Assembly (NCBI RefSeq): GCF_052425735.1
Contig: NC_135761.1
Coordinates: 16,554,001 to 16,618,000, forward strand
Source: Oculina patagonica
Lineage: Eukaryota
Direction of reading: 5' to 3'
DNA: 64,000 nt
Numbering within the stretch: position 1 is the first letter of the stretch; each line of letters starts with the position of its first letter. Made by a program: the position numbers and the translations under genes. Shown here piece by piece: positions 619 through 11,062 of the stretch. The notes below the pieces were generated by a model. It had not been told where the DNA came from and did no database searches. It saw only the letters and a list, made by a program, of their open reading frames with translations.

Positions 619-1970
619 ACAGCTAAGTTACTATAAGCAAATGATAGTTGTTATGTTAACGTTACGTTTCTCCAACTGTCCGATTTTCTTTAATGAACAA
701 TATATTCGAGATTTTCTGGTAGATCGAAATAATTACATTCACAAACGGGAAGTCTCGACAAGACCAGCTAAAAAAGCCTCTGTCGGTCTGAAAATCAAGA
801 CGTTTTCATCATTAATCATTTATGCCATAAAAAAAAAACATTGAAAATGTTAAAATGTAAAAATATATTTCCGTTTAGCTTAAAAAAAAAGCTTAAAAAA
901 CTGTGGTAAAATCTTTTTATCGTCTCGTCGAGTTCCTTGTTCGTAATGAAAAAGTAAACTAGCCTGCACGAAGTAATAAAAAAAATCAATCCATCAGTTC
1001 CATTGCGTGAGAAAAATTGTAAATAAAAAGAGATATTTTGGGCGCGCTGCCGTTTTATCACGAAATGTGGTAATACGTTTTCTTTGAGTTTCGCAAATAA
1101 AGTGGGGCGTGTAATTAGAGATCAATTAAAGTTCAGTGAAAACATGTCACGACTAATTTGCGTCTAAAATGGTGGGGTGCCGGAAATTTATTTATTGAGT
1201 CTTTAAAAATAAATTGAGGCTGTCACAAAGGGAAAATATGGTCCATTTTATTTTCCTCCTACTTCTTTATTAATAAAGTTGGCGATATATATCATTTCCG
1301 TTAAATTCTGTCCTCTTGTCAGCCCAAAGGAAGCAAATATGCAAATAGCAGGTCTCGGCTGAATTTGACACACTACGAAAAACGATTGAATTCATCTTTT
1401 TAACCTTTAAGCAATAAAGAGATTTTTTAGATAAACCAGTAATTGTTTGTAGAATTATTCTGGTAGAAACCCGGTTCAGTGTATTTGTTTTTTATTTGTT
1501 TTATTTTTTTTTTGTATGTAAAATATTGTGATATTGTTAATGTTTTTTTTTTTATTTTTATCGAAACAGAAAATGTATTTTTTAGGAATACTGATAAAAG
1601 CATCGCTCGATCAAGCAGACTAGTCGCGCAGGCGTTAAATTTTAACGTGGTAAGTTTCGCGTCTTATTAAGCACATGGGCATTTTGTCTGCGCATGCGCA
1701 AGATAAATCAGAATTCCAGATCGGCGCCATTTTCAACGTGTGAGCGCGCTTCGGTGGATTTTCAGCTGAGTGATCTACGCACTTGGAAAGCTTTCATGAA
1801 CAGATATGAAAGAGAATAACTTTTTTACATAGTCGTCTAACACTATGGATACTCGTGGTGTTTACCGTGACTTCGGATGAGGATATTTTGACGATCAAAC
1901 TGCGAACAAAACAAGAAAAATCCCCAAAACTGTGAAGTTTGACTTTTGATTTACGAAAGTTCAAGATGTC

Positions 1971-3897
1971 CACAGGTAATTTGCCTGACGAATCACACAT
2001 TTGATTCTTGCGTTTGGTTCGGCACAGTTGTAGAATCATACGAATTATTCTTATGATTCTCCACAATTGTAGAATATGTCATTGTATTTGGAAATAATTT
2101 TGTTGTGTGTAGAATCAAACACTAACGATCTAGTGTATTTCACAGGTCTGTGGAATCAAGCGGGAATCACACGTATTATAACTTATCATTCTCCGCAAAA
2201 GAAGAATACATCGCCGTTGTATTCAGAAAATAATAATTGTGTATCCTGTAAAATAGTTAAAATAAATCCAGTTGTATCCCGAACAATTCGAACCTTCCGC
2301 TATCTCGAATCTTTTCAATTCCCCTCCAGCTCATTTTCCTACTACGTTTAACCATCGATAACTTTATCTTCCGTATACCGGTAATTCCAACCTTCTCGAT
2401 TTCCTCTGAAGGCTTGAATTGTCTGTAGAATCGAGCGGGATGACAAAATCGACCAGCTGCAGTTCTACAGAGAATATATTTCGCCATCAAAACTCAAAAG
2501 ATGTTACCCAAGAACGCATGGCTACAGAAGTGAGGCACTTACCACTTGACTGTTCGGCTACACAGTTGTTTGAGTCTTATAAACTACAGTAGCTACTAAA
2601 CATGCAAACAGTAATTTAAATAAAACGTGGAATACTTCGCGGAATACTGCGTGGAATACTGCCTGATTCTTCAGGTGGTTTGTCAAATGAATATTTATTC
2701 CAATGCTCGATTCGACAGATGAATGTTTGATTCTATTAAAGGAAGACAATCCGCCCAATGCTGCTTGTCGGCTGCGTTTGCGCGATGAAAGTCAGCAGTG
2801 GAAAGCTCCTCTTATTACTAGTCGCACTTTACCCCCATATATCAATAAAATAATCAGAACTCCTTCGCCGGTCCTTAGTCTGTTACCTTCACTGTCTACC
2901 TGCACTTCGTGTCCACAATACTCACACCAGGAAATTGAGCCAGCACTGCAGTAATCTGTAAAATGCGGTAATTTTCATTCGTGCCTCCGAGACCGGGAAA
3001 TATTAAAATGCGATGGCTTCAACTAAATCAGTGACTTATTACACAGGTATGTAGAATCAAACAACAGGCTAAAATATCTATATATTATACAATTATTCTT
3101 CGAGGCAATCCTATGCGGAATCACACGATTTATTTTCTAAGTTTACAACCATGTGTAGAATCGTTTGGATTTGATTCAGCCAAATTGTGTACGCAATATT
3201 ATTCACGCAACTGATAGAAGGGTACCTTTACGCACCTATTAATGCTCAGAGAAAATATCTGATTTGTTTATATGCACGCATGCTCAGTGATGTCATGGAC
3301 AGCATAGATGGTACCACAAGTGTTGCAGGTTTGTAGTCCTTATAACTCACAGGAACTTCACTGTTAAACATCGAAGATTAATGGATGTTCCAGACGAGTA
3401 CACTACTCAGGAGACCCATGCCCACTGCTGCAGCTTATGCGGAAACAGTGGCTCGCTCAAAGCAGGGGTAACTTTTTACATAACATACTTACCTACTTTG
3501 TGACTGATAACTCAGCAAAGAAAGCCACTAAATGATTTTTTTTAATAAACATTTAAGCTTATGCAATAGTCTCCAAATTTTCGGGTTTTGATTCAATAAT
3601 AATGACTATTTGATTCTTCGAATTCACCGTATGATTCTACACGAGATTTCATGTTTTTCGCACATGATTCTTCACATTGTTTCTCGAAAACGTTTGATTC
3701 CTCGCATGAACAAAATAATAGTTCACGTGTGATTCCACAAATGAACATTTGATTCTTCGAATATGCCGCATTCAAGCGCTTGATTTTTCAGCTGATTTCT
3801 GTGAAATCATACGCGTTTGATTCAACAGTGGATATTGAAACAACTGTAGAATCAATTGTGGAATACATCGATTGATTCATCAGGCAAATTACCTGTG
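1971..3897. mobile_element. Non-autonomous CACTA/EnSpm-like element nested in the large transposon
   Basis: 24-bp TIR CACAGGTAATTTGCCTGA(C/T)GAATC at 1971-1994 and 3874-3897; 3-bp TSD GTC (1968-1970, 3898-3900); many subterminal TGTAGAATCA/TGATTC repeats; no long ORF. Confidence 0.8.
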
Positions 3898-5583
3898 GTC
3901 CATAGGAGACGAACAACACCGAAGGATAATCTCAAGATGTTGAGGTTCTATGGGCTTAAATCATTGGTTGTATTGTTAAGACGATCGTCAGATACACGGC
4001 CCTATTCAAGGTAGGAAATTTGGAATTTGATCTGATTTTGTCTCCACTTCAAAGCGAATTTGCATTTTCTTTCCAACCGCCCCCAAGTTTCAAATCACTC
4101 CAGACAACATTGTCTTTTTTTTCTCTTTACAGCCGTGTAGGACTCCAGGCTTAAAAAAATGTTCCAGTGTGCAAGATTTTAATCTTCTTATGAGAGCTTT
4201 TGGTGAAGTTTAATTCGGCAAATTTTAGTAGTCTTTCCAGCCGTGGATCACAGAGGTCTTTGGTCTTGCAGCTCTACAAATCTCCTGTACAAGGTATGTA
4301 GTGATTCACCTTTGCCGTGGTTGCAGTCTCGTTATGTCACACTTTGACTTCAATTTATTTTTTCCTTCGTTTTAGCGGGAATTTTGTCGTTGCATTTTTT
4401 TGCCTTCAAGTGCTTTCTTGAGTAAAAACTGGTGAAAATCTCTTTTATTTGACTCGCCCCCAAGTTCCGCAATACTATCAAGACTTTCTTTGCTTGTTCC
4501 TCTTTCATTATGTCTAGTTTATTTATCCAAGAAAAATGTCTGCACCTTATTTTGTGAAGCAAAACTTCTGGCCTTCGCAGTCGAAGATGGCCACTCTGTG
4601 TACGAAATATGTAGATTTCGAACCGAATGGCGTAAGCTTTATTTCACTGGAATGCCTCTGACTTGCAAACGACTGGAGCTCTCTCGATTTTTATTTTTTA
4701 ACGACTACGGTTGTCATGCTAGGAAAATGTTTGGAGAATGCAGTCTGGTTTATAGCAGAAGAAAATGTTTTGGAACACGCTGTAATGCCCAAGTTTCCTC
4801 TCATTTTAAGGTATGAAGTTTTGGAAAAAAGGTGCTTATGTTTATAATTGGCATGTATGGCAAGATGTGTGTGCCTTCAGCACCTGTTTGTTTGGGTTTC
4901 AGTACTCGCAGGAGAGACGCCTTTTATAAGCAAAACTCCACACAGAGGTCAGAGTGAATTTCTGTTATTCACAATGCTTTTAAAGATATCCAAAAATACA
5001 ATAAGTTCTCAGCAAATACTACAAATAATTATTTAATTATATAAAAGTTTTTTTGCAAATGTTTTGTAGGCATTGGCTTCAAATGGAACCACTTATAAAC
5101 TTTGCCACAAACAAAATAAAAATAGATTGATAAAGGGCCTTTTACATATGTTAATTCATAGGCCATGTTAAATGACTCTTTTTAAGATACAATATAATAA
5201 ATTTTAGTATAAAAACATTAATCTACAGTGCATGAAATGTGCCAGGAAGGAAAGTTATTTCAACAGGCACAAACCAGCCATGGTATCAGTTTGTGTTCTC
5301 TTATTATTCTTGGAGCAAAACATTGCTAAGATAGGAAATATATCTACTAAGTATTTTGCAAAATAAAGTCACAAGAGAGGCTTTGTAATTTGATCTTAAC
5401 AAGGTTGCTGAAAGACTATTTAGCCTTACAATGTATTTTAAACTAAGAAAGAAGCCATACATGTGTCTTTTGGACTGAGAAATATTTTGAGTTTTAAAAG
5501 TTCAGAGCAGGAAAGTCACGCTTGTTATTTCCTTATAATAATGATAATCATGTGAATATGAATAATTTTCTTACAAAACTTAA

Positions 5584-5940
5584 AGGAGCCATATCACGGG
5601 GATTTCGCAGATTGTTGGTCAAAACTGTTCTCACGTTAGGTTAGGCAACTTTAACCATGAAAAACATTATCTTTGAACATCTAAAGAAAGATATAACCTT
5701 AATCTGCATATAAAAAATCAAGCTATGGTTATAAATAACGATTTTTTTTAAGTTGCACGGAAACAATTTGAAAAATTAAGCCTTAATTTTTAAAGCTGCA
5801 ATCTATTTCCATCTGAGCCATCCACAGCCAAAGACGCTCGTTAATAGTATCAGTGATCTAATAGACTATTATTTTTAGGTTTCCTGTGTTACAAATATAA
5901 ATTTTCGCTGTTCAAAAATCTGTTAAAATCCGAAGTTCCT
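5584..5940. mobile_element. TTAA-flanked MITE (Kolobok/piggyBac-like target), nested
   Basis: TTAA|AGGAGCCATATCACGG ... CCGAAGTTCCT|TTAA; a related, 5'-decayed copy lies at ~22960-23248. Confidence 0.6.
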
Positions 5941-5963
5941 TTAAGTGATACAATGTACATGTA

Positions 5964-6194
5964 CCATCTTTATTATTTACTACACATTTGATGATTTCGA
6001 CATTGCTGATCCTAGCAGTATGCAGGACGTGTGTCACATATCAACCTAGTAAATGGCCCAGCTCACAACGAGTCTCTCGTAGCTCAGTTGGTTAGAGCGC
6101 CCAACCAGTATCTGGGAGGCCATGCGTTCGATTCCCGTCGGGGACTCAGATTTTTTTTTTGTCCCACGCTTGTGTCATGTTGAATAATTTCTTC
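5964..6194 (+). mobile_element. tRNA-containing SINE-like repeat
   Basis: A box TAGCTCAGTTGG and B box GTTCGATTCC in a cloverleaf at ~6071-6147 followed by a T-run; TSD ACAATG(T/C)ACATGTA at 5950-5963 and 6195-6208. Confidence 0.75.
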
Positions 6195-6291
6195 ACAATG
6201 CACATGTAGTTTTAAGACTGTTAATTTTGGTTAGCTCCAGGTTTGTGCATGATCTTTGTTCAAGTGGAGGTGAGGTTTGGGTACTTGTACT

Positions 6292-9200
6292 TTACTTAAG
6301 GCCTAAGATAGCTAGGTTTGCACCTTGTAACTGCGTTTGCCAGTCTCTGATAACCATTATTTGAAGGTACCTCACAAAGTTGCTGATATTTCCAGAGACA
6401 CTAGTTGCAACAACACCTCCATGCAAGCCATGCTTGTGACTTTCAAACAGACAAATTTCTTTTTGGTTGAAGCATAATACCATTGTCTTGTCTGGCGGAA
6501 CAATCAATACTGCAGCAAAGTTTGGATGTAGTTGATGGTATTCTACAAGATAGTCCTCAAGGTCTTCAACAGAAAAGAAACCCATGTCTGCAATGATTTC
6601 AAGCTTCTGGAAATTCTGGTCATTTTGTTGAAGGACCTGTCTGACATCTAGGTTTGGTTGATGGGCTGGCATGTTGAATGAGCTGTAAATCTGATTTCCT
6701 TTTATCATTGCGCTAGTGTAAATTGGTATGACAAGGCTTAGATCTTGCAATTGTTTAGGTATTAAAAGAGACCCCTCCAAAAATTTTTTGTCCAGTTAGT
6801 GCAGAAATTACTGTACATGCGTTGCTTCCGCCCATTCTTCCACCCATTGATGACTGGGATACGTACGAGGGCATCAACCACTCTGTCACATCTAAATATT
6901 GCTTCTGTGTCACAGATATGCGAAGAGTATCTGATCTTGGTGTTGAGGCTGGTTGGTCATTGGTACTGCTCTGGCTACCCTGGTTGGCCTTGTGCCACGA
7001 ACAAGGACATTTGGAGCAATTAACATCATTACTGGCTGTGCATAGGCTGTTATCACAGAAATTACATTTAACCTGTGAGTTATTATTAAACCTCTTATGT
7101 CCACGGACAGGATGGTGACATTTTCTACAATGTGGTGGTGCCTTACTTGGAGAAGGTGTTCTGGTGCTAGGAATTGATCCTTGGCCAAGATCAGAACTGC
7201 TAAATGGTTGGGAAGCTGGATTGAGATTAGCAAGGTCGTTGTTAAGCTGCTGTATTATGTTATCATACTCCTCCCTCTCCATTTCCCTTAAACAAGTAAT
7301 TTCATTAGAATGATCATCATCTGCTGCCACTGGTGTTGTTTGGTTAGTGTGATCATTGCCAGACTCTGGTACGCCATGGGTGGTGGATGCAGGATGTAAA
7401 ATGGCTTGTTTTGCAATTTCACCCAGTTCATTTACTTTCTGTTTCAGGAAATCCTTACATAATGGGCATGACGTTGATCCAGCAAGACATCTGTCATGAA
7501 AAGAATGACAGCAACCATGCAAGATTGTCCAATTTTCCTCCTGGGTGGACATGTTACATTCAGGTAAGTCACATTTTTTTGTTGGATCTGGCTTGATGTC
7601 AGCATGATATCCTAGTGGCAAAACATTAGTTTTCATACTGCTGTTGGGGGCCATTGTTGGTAGTGTCACATGGGTTGGAGCACTGGTGCTGCTTCTGCTT
7701 TGTGAAGAAAACCGACTTTGTCCAGGACCCTGAGAGATTTTTCTGAACATTGTGGACAGTAATTGAGCACACTTGACTTTAAGAAACTGCAGCTGATTGT
7801 GCGAAAAAGAAAACTGTTTTGGTGCAGTAAAAAATGATCTAAAGTGGGACTGTTTTTCTTTTGACTGGAAAATGGATTTTGCTTTCTTTCTAAGGTCATC
7901 AGGCGTGTCATAGTCTTTTGTTTGTGACCGAAGTATGCTATGCGTGTTTTCAACAGGATATTCATCAAAGATTGTTATGTAATTCTTGAGCAGGTTATAC
8001 AATTGTGGTGCATACTTTCCCCAGTGAGAGCACATGTTGATCCAAACGAGCGGAGCTTTGTTGTAGTGCCTCCGGCTTAAGCAGGTGAACATAATCCAAA
8101 TTCTAATCATGGCTCTGAAGTACTCAGAGAACTTGTTGAGTTTAAAGGAAATACTGTATATTGACAATACCAAAGGTATATAATTGTCTAGCAAATTAAA
8201 AAGTGTCCCATACTCCACATCTTTGAACCTAGAGAACTTTGTTATCACCGTTCCTCGTATGAGAGTCCAACCTCCATACACAATTTCCAAAATCAGACTT
8301 ACTCTCCAGGGTTTTGGTTTGTCTGCTAATTTGCTCCTAGGAAAAATTGTTTCATAAACTGTTTTGAAAAATGGGTGATAGCAATTAACAATGTGTTCCC
8401 TGCTGTTTAAGGATATGTGAAGTGGCCCAATAGTTGGCACGATAGACAAGATGGATGGCTGTGATGTTGTATTCGTGGGCAAGCTGTCTTCAGTTGGATT
8501 GTTAACCGTACCAGTGGTCAATGGAAATGAGTAGGAGCAGTGATCAGCCAAAGTATTGTCATGTTCCTGAGGAGCATCAGTCAACCCAGGATGACAGCCA
8601 ATGAACTTCTGAAATGTTTCATATGCATTTTGCCTGCAATAGAATTGGCAAGGCCAATCCCCTGGCTGAAAAACAATAAACTTCCTCATATAAGCAGCCA
8701 AGCCAGTGTTCATTACAACATCATATGCAATATCAAAGTCCTCCTTTGACTTCAGTCTGAGCTCTATGAAATCCAACAAATGTAAATCATCCATTTTCCG
8801 CATTGTTCTAACATTATCATTGTCACAAATACTGATGTACATTGATCCTGTGTCTCTCAAGTTCGGGATTAAAAAATGCTTCGGTAAGCCAGTCTGGCAT
8901 CACAGACGCATAACTAGAACTGATATCATGCATGCATGACGCAGATGTAATTAATTGTTCGCAGGATTCAATGTCAATGCCATTTTGGTCATGAACACAA
9001 TTAGCTTGATCGACGGTTACTGCTGGGATATCCTTAAAGGCTTTCACAACGATTGTGCACATTCTCTTTGCCTCAGAAGACTCGTCGTTTTGTGGCCTTT
9101 TCTTTGTGTGCACCGATGTGTAGTCATCAATGATAAGTACAAGGAGCCACTTGAATTCTATTGCTTGTTTTACAAAATCCTCAAATGATTGGGAGTGACA

Positions 9201-11062
9201 TTCAGACATTGTGTTTAAGATATTATTTACAGTTCTTCTTGCACAGCAGTGCCCCATAATGTGTTGTGTTTCAATACCTTCTTGATTTATTTGATTGCTT
9301 CTGAGGTACAGTGCATGGTCTATTTGCAGAAGATTACATGTTTGGCTCAGACAGTAGCATAAGTTGTAAATGAATGAAACCACCCTCTTTTTGTTCAGAC
9401 AAACACGATCTGCTGAGTGCCTAGAACTTGTTATTGACTCCAGAATAGTGTCAAACAACTTTGTTGCACCAGCAGAAATACAAAACTCCCTAAAACTGTC
9501 TGGATCATACACAGTTTCTTTCTTGTTTGTTACCATCTCAGAGTAAATTCTCCTTTTGACCATCTCAATTTCCTTTTTCATGTCACACCCTGTAGTGGAT
9601 TGGTATAACATTTACAAAAAACACAAAGATTGTAAAAATATTTAGCCATATTTTTCTTGCAAAATACAAGAATTTGATAAAGCATCCGACAGAATACCCT
9701 GTAGCTGCTTGCTTAATAATGACTGTTTATTTTTTGTAAGAAGGGCAAGGCTGTGTTACAGGTATTCATGTTGTACGTGTGGCTCACAGATTGTTATGTG
9801 TTAGTTAAACCGAAAATATTTTATCAAAAAATAAGCTGAATAAATAAACGAAATTGAAAAATGTACTCGAGTGCTTATCTACACCTGAAATAGTTAGGGG
9901 CAAAACCATTTGACTTTGGAGAGGGGGGGGGGGGGGGGTGGTTGTTTGACATCAAAAGACAAACTTTCCTCCAAGCAAAGAAATAATGTACATCTTTTTA
10001 ACGAAGACAAAATATATCAGCCTTGTGTCTTTTTCATCAGTGGAAAAACGGAGAAGAGAATCTTTCAAATCAGAAATCTTCCAACCCTCCCCCCTTGGTG
10101 GTGAGGCACATTATTATTGCAAGTTTAGAGTAGGGAAAGAAACATCCATTTATTCTGGTCCAAAGCCGGCTGAGATGTAATGAGCCTGGTATCTCATAAA
10201 ACACTAGATTTGTATAAAGTGTTGTCTACTGCGTTTACACAGGTGTGGAGGGCAGGGGAAAAAGTGAATTGGATTTAAATGGCTTGCGACCGGTTATTCT
10301 TCATTGAAGTTCCTTCTAAAGTGTAAACGTATTTTTATTCTGCCGAGTAAATTGTAGCTTTTAGGTGTGATACTGTTTTTTTTTCAGTTATGCAGAGAAT
10401 GCTGTCTATACAATACAATGTAACTTATTCTTCCATTAAAAAGTCGAATGGTAGGAACCAAAAGCAAATAAATTAAATTACTTTCTGCTAAAATCTTCAA
10501 TTTTTCCTCCATTTCTAAAAACGTTTCCTTTGGTATAACTACCATTTCTTCTGTTCTACCTGTACATGAACTATCACTGGCTGACTTTTCTGTTCCTAAA
10601 TCTTTCTGTTTCTTTATTCTTCCTCTCTGATTGCGATTCATGCCAACAAACTTTCAACAAAAAAGTAAACTTTTGTCAAATTTTAAAGTTATTTATTGAA
10701 GCCTTTTTACAAAACGTATTTAAGTTCACAGGGAATGAAGCACACTGAATGTTCAATAATGTCTCGATATTATTACTAACGTGATGGAATCGTTTTCCAG
10801 TGCGTCGATGTTCCTGCACAGCTCGTCTGCATCCTTCACATATTACACCCGCGTTCGTACCATCTGTCAAAACTACACCAAAACAAAACTCCAACTCTTT
10901 CACATAGGCTTCTACCTTCTGAAATGGCCTCGATTGGGATTTCTTCCTGCACACCACACAACCATTTTCGGACTTCCCTGCACTATTACACAATTCACAA
11001 ACCAATAAAAGAACAGCAACAATTTGAAGGCGCCATCGAAAAGTTTTCGCGAAGATCGCCAT
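6292..11062 (-). CDS. Putative transposase: C4 Zn finger + DDE-like core + RING-H2 + Cys/His cluster + papain-like peptidase; two +1 frameshifts
   Basis: Phase-compatible exons 11062-10781 (CAC|gttagt), 10650-10482 (aag|...GAAA|gtaatt) and 9589-6292 (tacag|GG). ORFs 8823-9611, 6755-8860 and 6292-6780 join if one base is removed at 8827-8829 and one at 6784-6789, giving ~1248 aa. Motifs: CVVC..CEGC; IIDDY, PGDWP, IGPLH, DEYPVENTH; CDLPEC..CCHSFHDRC..CPLC; GSNACTVI..LFESH. Confidence 0.75.

Follow-up and report, generated by a model that had tools for sequence, protein, structure and literature searches.

We found that the region under study in a 64,000-nucleotide window of DNA from the coral Oculina patagonica (the window being the whole stretch that was analysed) is the C-terminal accessory region of a cut-and-paste DNA transposase, which is encoded by a single open reading frame (ORF) in an element with terminal inverted repeats (TIRs) and a 9-bp target-site duplication (TSD). 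Behind the catalytic core, the tail of this transposase is predicted to consist, in order, of a RING-H2 finger with a long helix, an acidic linker that contains another helix, a Cys/His cluster, and a papain-like cysteine peptidase domain of the VTD type, that is, one resembling the tegument-type deubiquitinases (DUBs), with an active site made up of Gln, Cys, and [Glu or Asp]-Ser-His. We consider it quite probable that the tail is built in this way, with a VTD that would be an active isopeptidase and a RING that would recruit a ubiquitin-conjugating enzyme (E2). An earlier note on this DNA had placed a RING-H2 finger and a DUB-like peptidase in the tail, and all of its coordinates, those of the RING, the Cys codon, and the His codon, were exact to the base.

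The putative VTD-type domain (positions 6295-6895; this and all other gene features described below lie on the minus strand) was delimited by profile comparison, AlphaFold2 (AF2) modelling, and Foldseek searches. The AF2 model of the VTD tail, predicted from an alignment of 11 tails, had a mean predicted local distance difference test (pLDDT) score of 91.7 and a predicted template modelling (pTM) score of 0.91. When the model was compared with solved structures, Foldseek returned seven chains from five entries at E <= 0.001, the next match being noise at 0.02. The VTD entries 8ADC, 8ADD, and 8ADB matched at 6e-8 to 3e-6 and two chains of the viral protein M48 at ~1e-6, and AvrPphB followed more weakly at 6.5e-4. 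In a test of family membership, the tail fitted the solved structures of VTDs and M48 more closely than those of other families of cysteine peptidase. Searched against the sequences of the PDB, a profile built from 11 tails had as its top match Wc-VTD, a bacterial VTD deubiquitinase; this match was weak (E 0.014), and its alignment pairs the G-S-N-A-C of the tails with G-K-S-A-C and their E-S-H with D-P-H. These models and searches support the C76-type peptidase proposed in the earlier note: the predicted fold of the tail domain is papain-like, and its closest solved relatives are the C76/VTD tegument-type deubiquitinases.

The candidate catalytic residues are strictly conserved. We compared 21 tails, which diverge to about 30% identity, and found that the catalytic Cys of the GSNAC motif (6815-6817), the catalytic His, the Ser between the acid and the His, and a Gln located 13 residues before the Cys (6854-6856) are each present in 21/21, so that the Cys and the His, whose conservation the earlier note had singled out for checking, are both invariant. 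The residue two before the His is acidic in every tail, being Glu in 14 and Asp in 7; the window copy has Glu, and its Glu-Ser-His (6436-6444), which supplies the acid and the catalytic His of the [DE]-x-H motif, is the part that HMMER aligned to the D-P-H of Wc-VTD. In the AF2 model, the catalytic Cys is residue 33, at the N-terminus of helix 33-46, and [DE]-S-H lies on a strand. The invariant Gln is presumed to be the oxyanion-hole residue, a role that is only inferred because a literature search for the residue numbers of M48 found nothing. It has been reported that VTDs can be told apart by the acid-x-His arrangement, both from conventional papain-like DUBs and from members of the YopT/AvrPphB family (PMC9741609). 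When the VTD was predicted in complex with ubiquitin from the same genome, the score was 0.31, the mark being 0.34, and this counts neither way.

The finger (7457-7573) has the form C-x4-C-x14-C-x-H-x2-H-x2-C-x6-C-x2-C in the window copy and C-x4-C-x(13-15)-C-x-H-x2-H-x2-C-x6-C-x2-C in the family. In 38 sequences, its eight RING ligands show no or almost no variation; they are conserved across the cnidarian members and recognisable in fungal relatives. When a profile of these 38 sequences was compared with the PDB, all 31 matches at E <= 0.01 were RING E3 ubiquitin ligases, among which the RING-H2 domains of ARK2C, Arkadia, RNF165, and EL5 matched the whole finger at 1.5e-5 to 5e-5. Alignment of the finger with the zf-RING_2 domains of the same genome by hhalign gave a probability of 96.4% (E 1e-9). 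Among 29 relatives, Pfam zf-RING_5 matches nine and zf-RING_2 five; the window copy itself is unmatched. The AF2 model of the finger (pLDDT > 90) shows a hairpin and a short helix, and then, after the last Cys pair, a long helix (7397-7456; model helix 70-89, pLDDT 90-95) with a conserved L...A pattern, in which L80 is invariant and A84 nearly so. On the other side, the finger is preceded by a conserved motif, LP..FG...K...LPLG...PD (7574-7663, with invariant P, K, P, G, and P), which is kept also in relatives whose called protein ends before the RING. A Pro follows C7 in 28 of 36 sequences and an Arg or Lys follows C8 in 21 of 36; both are features that may favour E2 binding, and they point to it only indirectly. 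We also considered a PHD finger (C4-H-C3) and rejected it because the ligand order is C3H2C3, ligands 4 and 5 both being His with C-x-H-x2-H spacing. The ligand order, together with profile matches to RING E3s only, supports the prediction of a RING-H2 finger, and the claim made earlier is thus borne out.

Between these two domains, the acidic linker contains a predicted amphipathic helix (7229-7276; AF2 helix 130-145, pLDDT about 90), which is also apparent as a conserved pattern in the alignment. It is followed by the Cys/His cluster that had been noted in the tail before, now located at 6992-7132 and found to be conserved in relatives, with the pattern H-C-x2-C-x-H-x4-H ... C-x2-C-x4-C ... 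C-x-C-x2-[HC]. Eight residues of this cluster are invariant and five more nearly invariant in an alignment of 29 sequences. Its profile gave only chance-level matches in the PDB, Pfam offered no consistent family, and the ESM Atlas returned no usable match; the AF2 model is poor over this region (pLDDT 47-61). Judged by its conservation, the cluster is real and probably of the zinc type, and it matches no known domain.

How widely is this tail distributed? About 80 relatives were found, and they fall into three domain sets. The first, with core, RING, cluster, and VTD, comprises proteins of about 1000-1170 aa, with examples from Oculina, Acropora, Dendronephthya, and Paramuricea; the others have core, RING, and cluster, or core and RING only. 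In one relative of the last type, the called protein ends before the finger, which is found in a following exon. We constructed a tree of the core, in which the window copy was represented by the ORF pieces 8823-9611 and 6755-8860 with an X at the frameshift break. The fungal relatives fall outside, and one clade is RING-only; a second clade, which is well supported, has the full tail in its major subclades and VTD-less lineages nested within. One VTD-less member has a true stop, with no VTD in the 3.3 kb downstream. On this distribution, the RING is a family-wide part of the transposase, fungal relatives included, and the VTD was gained a single time, in the ancestor of a cnidarian clade, and has since been lost repeatedly. 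A search of the genome with the tail profile found 31 places, several of which lie just downstream of distant core copies.

The RING ligands, the cluster residues, and the Gln/Cys/acid-Ser-His set are kept in relatives down to about 25-30% identity, and these patterns are therefore more than chance. We further compared the window copy with its closest intact relative, the gene encoding P0022, which is 82% identical over the core and 70-80% identical along the three ORF pieces. The ratio of nonsynonymous to synonymous substitution rates (dN/dS) was 0.08 in the core, 0.26 in the RING, 0.18 in the cluster, 0.11 in the VTD, and 0.35 in the linker, values that are rough since synonymous sites are near saturation. 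These ratios indicate that the tail is under purifying selection and is kept about as strictly as the catalytic core.

The window DNA, AT-rich and eukaryotic with few long ORFs, belongs to a genome of 529 Mb. Three of its ORFs form a chain in which each overlaps the next: 8823-9611, an N-terminal piece of 262 aa; 6755-8860, a middle piece of 701 aa, defined by its translation and by comparison with genome copies, which covers the remainder of the core together with the RING and the Cys/His cluster and runs on through the first third of the VTD, so that the catalytic Cys falls within it; and 6292-6780, a C-terminal piece of 162 aa plus the stop, whose translation gives the remainder of the VTD. 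Because these ORFs are jointly collinear with single long ORFs of intact paralogs elsewhere in the same genome, we deduced that they are one gene broken by two 1-nt frameshifts. Frameshift 1 (8825-8830), at which the N-terminal piece ends, falls in a TTT run that has one T more than the unplaced contig C1524; this contig is 98.3% identical to the window region, lacks the extra T at 8827, and has the frame open. Frameshift 2 (6770-6780) falls in an A6T5 run and splits the VTD between the catalytic Cys and the catalytic His, which consequently sit in different reading frames, a separation on which the earlier note was silent. With its gene broken in two places, the window copy cannot make the full protein as assembled. 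A public O. patagonica gene model of 782 aa (P0040, ACROYT_G012677), whose RING segment is identical to that of the window copy, appears to be the model that matches this copy. It lacks the beginning of the VTD, catalytic Cys included, so that the deposited form hides the active site; apparently, the model was drawn so as to avoid the frameshift.

Is the gene part of a mobile element? The whole DNA transposon spans 1661-11200, including the 9-bp TSD GTCTTATTA (1661-1669 and 11192-11200), identical 9-mers that can be read directly in the flanks of an inverted repeat. The element is 9.5 kb long, and its 29-nt TIRs, which are 93% complementary, lie at 1670-1698, beyond the 3′ end of the gene, and at 11163-11191, beyond its 5′ end. 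The cleanest proof of mobility is provided by the lineage of an 8.2-kb paralogous element, which carries an uninterrupted ORF of 1120 aa and occurs on two chromosomes, the two loci being 98.7% identical. This element has sharp boundaries, inverted ends of ~18 nt, and a different 9-bp duplication at each site, and it demonstrates that intact, tail-bearing copies have moved recently. The intact paralogs in this genome are 1014-1120 aa long, and they continue through the VTD, which answers the earlier question of whether intact copies end before this domain. The 1120-aa transposase is the sole long protein encoded by the 8.2-kb element, and a comparison of element copies aimed at a second conserved gene within the element found none.

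The window element has its ends, including the arm at 11163-11191, and a 0.7-kb internal block in common with the 6.6-kb element that encodes P0022 (L076:3490-10137). Compared with the latter, it has an additional ~3 kb on the downstream side of the gene (compared region 1670-6291), which probably represents nested insertions. A 128-aa ORF with two C-x2-C pairs (10676-11062, minus strand) is located inside the window element, upstream of the transposase start. In the 1120-aa paralog (L006:457-3819), whose VTD lies at L006:3193-3816, the linker between the RING and the cluster (residues ~760-840) holds a tandem repeat rich in Ser, Thr, Pro, and Gln, which is also visible in the DNA as a 127-nt repeat and is absent from the window lineage. 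As for the affiliation of the transposase, ESM Atlas features of the core of this paralog (residues 1-610) adjoin clusters annotated as DUF6589 with a score of 0.94, from cnidarian, basidiomycete, and mollusc sources; a Pfam hmmscan gave no confirmation of this placement. Academ transposons make target duplications of 3-4 bp, and the 9-bp duplications speak against membership of that group. The same genome also contains large arrays of diverged ubiquitin-like repeats (G000:C11 at 19.21-19.35 Mb and 21.6-21.8 Mb, plus C1232), in which PF00240 matches dozens of times within long open frames that reach 843 aa; these arrays are distinct from the canonical polyubiquitin gene (C6:2511546-2512913).

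Several of our observations weigh against a tail with two working ubiquitin-system domains. The sequence similarity to known VTDs is marginal, as the E value of 0.014 indicates, and when the three ORFs of the window copy and four from paralogs were scanned with Pfam, no relevant match emerged at E <= 1, the tegument peptidase model included. Asp-x-His has been called invariable among VTDs (PMC9741609), and the Glu that would serve as the triad acid in the window copy and in two thirds of its relatives departs from that rule. In the finger, the first ligand pair is C-x4-C in 33 of 36 sequences and C-x3-C in the other three, never C-x2-C. Moreover, the C6-C7 segment has six residues, four fewer than in the matched RINGs; the usual helix bearing the E2-contacting Trp is therefore shortened and the Trp removed. 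Fold searches with the model that covers the RING and the cluster returned weak cross-brace matches in which PHD and RING fingers are mixed, and they did not tell the two apart. VTD-less lineages exist and are multi-copy (P0015), and the DUB is therefore not needed for every member of the family. Finally, the window copy itself carries the two frameshifts.

What might such a tail do? In intact copies, the VTD would act as an isopeptidase on ubiquitin or a ubiquitin-like modifier and could strip chains from the transposase or its partners, protecting them from degradation, a role that has been proposed for the VTDs of Helitrons (PMC9741609). The RING would recruit an E2 and might ubiquitinate the transposase itself, chromatin, or host factors, so that the two domains could act as a self-limiting ubiquitin-editing module, like other fusions of an E3 and a DUB. 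In its most far-reaching form, in which an active RING-H2 ligase and an active VTD jointly set the lifetime of the transposase or write and erase chromatin ubiquitin at the site of transposition, in which the cluster is a new zinc domain reading DNA or ubiquitin, and in which this is the first TIR/DDE-type family so equipped, we regard this proposal as tentative and, taken as a whole, somewhat doubtful.

A rival reading, to which we would grant a little less than an even chance, is that the finger is a structural zinc module, serving transposon-end binding or oligomerisation rather than ubiquitin ligation, and that the VTD alone touches the ubiquitin system. The finger occurs in the whole family, in VTD-less clades and fungal relatives alike, and in this respect it behaves as part of the transposase core would; its C-x4-C first pair and shortened C6-C7 segment are atypical of RINGs, the basic linchpin residue is found in just 21 of 36 sequences, and its fold matches mix PHD with RING. 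The cysteine-rich domain (CRD) of the piggyBac transposase is a DNA-binding cross-brace finger (PMC5861402). A structural role sits less easily with the C3H2C3 ligand order, the RING-H2 spacing around the two His, and the commonest ending, C-P-x-C-[RK], and every significant profile match in the PDB is to an active RING E3. Furthermore, RAG1 is an example of a transposase-derived enzyme that carries a working RING E3.

The papain-like domain, for its part, could be a protease rather than a deubiquitinase, cutting the transposase or a host protein in the manner of YopT/AvrPphB, or it could remove NEDD8, SUMO, UFM1, or ATG8. One herpesviral VTD also has deneddylase activity (PMC9741609), and the complex prediction with ubiquitin did not decide the matter. 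However, we rejected membership of the YopT/AvrPphB family (MEROPS C58), whose conventional order is Cys-His-Asp (PMC9741609), whereas in the coral domain the acid comes two residues before the His, as it does in VTDs. Processing of a polyprotein had been raised in the earlier note as well; there is no sign of a polyprotein, nor is a conserved cleavage site evident, and the element encodes one ORF. We consider these alternative activities unlikely. Less likely still, to the point of being very improbable, is that the tail no longer has a function and survives as a pseudo-enzyme, either decayed or inactive. Drosophila is known to have inactive VTDs (PMC9741609), and the two frameshifts of the window copy and the stops in many genomic copies would suit such a remnant, whereas the catalytic residues are invariant over deep divergence, the dN/dS of the VTD is close to that of the core (0.11 and 0.08), and intact ORFs lie inside recently moved elements.

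A study of 2022 (Erven et al., PMC9741609) set out the VTD family, how it has spread through transposons, and the fusion proteins in which it occurs in cnidarians; it reported that Helitron VTDs are active DUBs, that cnidarian VTDs are fused to transposon-associated domains, and that a VTD is fused to an RBR ligase, also an E3, in Agaricomycetes mushrooms. A TIR cut-and-paste host, a RING-H2 in the same polypeptide, and a Glu-containing triad were not found in its text and text-form supplements or in our literature search. The coral family widens the range of VTDs, which now takes in TIR transposons and a triad with Glu. Transposons, like herpesviruses, seem to depend on deubiquitinase activity. 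The coral family offers elements that are intact, have moved recently, and have a single ORF and well-defined ends; it joins a domain of the E3 type and one of the DUB type in a single protein; and it includes natural sister lineages that lost the DUB and kept the RING. It should thus be a useful comparative and experimental system for asking how ubiquitin affects a transposase.

How, then, does this tail compare with known systems? Ubiquitin-system domains that ride on transposases or transposons include the N-terminal RING E3 of RAG1, Ulp1 in Mutator-like elements (MULEs), and OTU in Helitrons. These precedents belong to other transposase superfamilies and other domain families, and to our knowledge none of them combines a RING with a VTD. 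Among the VTDs (MEROPS C76 type), the nearest known counterparts are DrT1-VTD of a Helitron (8ADD), Wc-VTD1 of Waddlia (8ADB/8ADC), and M48 of murine cytomegalovirus (MCMV; 2J7Q). The coral domain shares with these a Cys at the start of a helix and an acid-x-His motif with the acid before the His, and, like the Helitron VTD, it is borne by a transposon. It differs in that its host is a TIR cut-and-paste transposase and not a rolling-circle Helentron, in that the E3-type domain that accompanies it is a RING-H2 within one and the same polypeptide, in that its acid is Glu in two thirds of the tails, and in that its sequence is too dissimilar for any Pfam model to match. The finger, in turn, resembles the RING-H2 domains of Arkadia, ARK2C (RNF165), RNF38, and EL5 (zf-RING_2 and zf-RING_5) in its C3H2C3 order, its C-x-H-x2-H-x2-C spacing, the Leu after C6, the C-P-x-C-[RK] ending, and, tentatively, a predicted beta-beta-alpha core. 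Unlike these domains, it has a first pair of the form C-x4-C instead of C-x2-C and a shorter C6-C7 segment without the usual Trp, and it lies within a transposase, with a long helix behind it.

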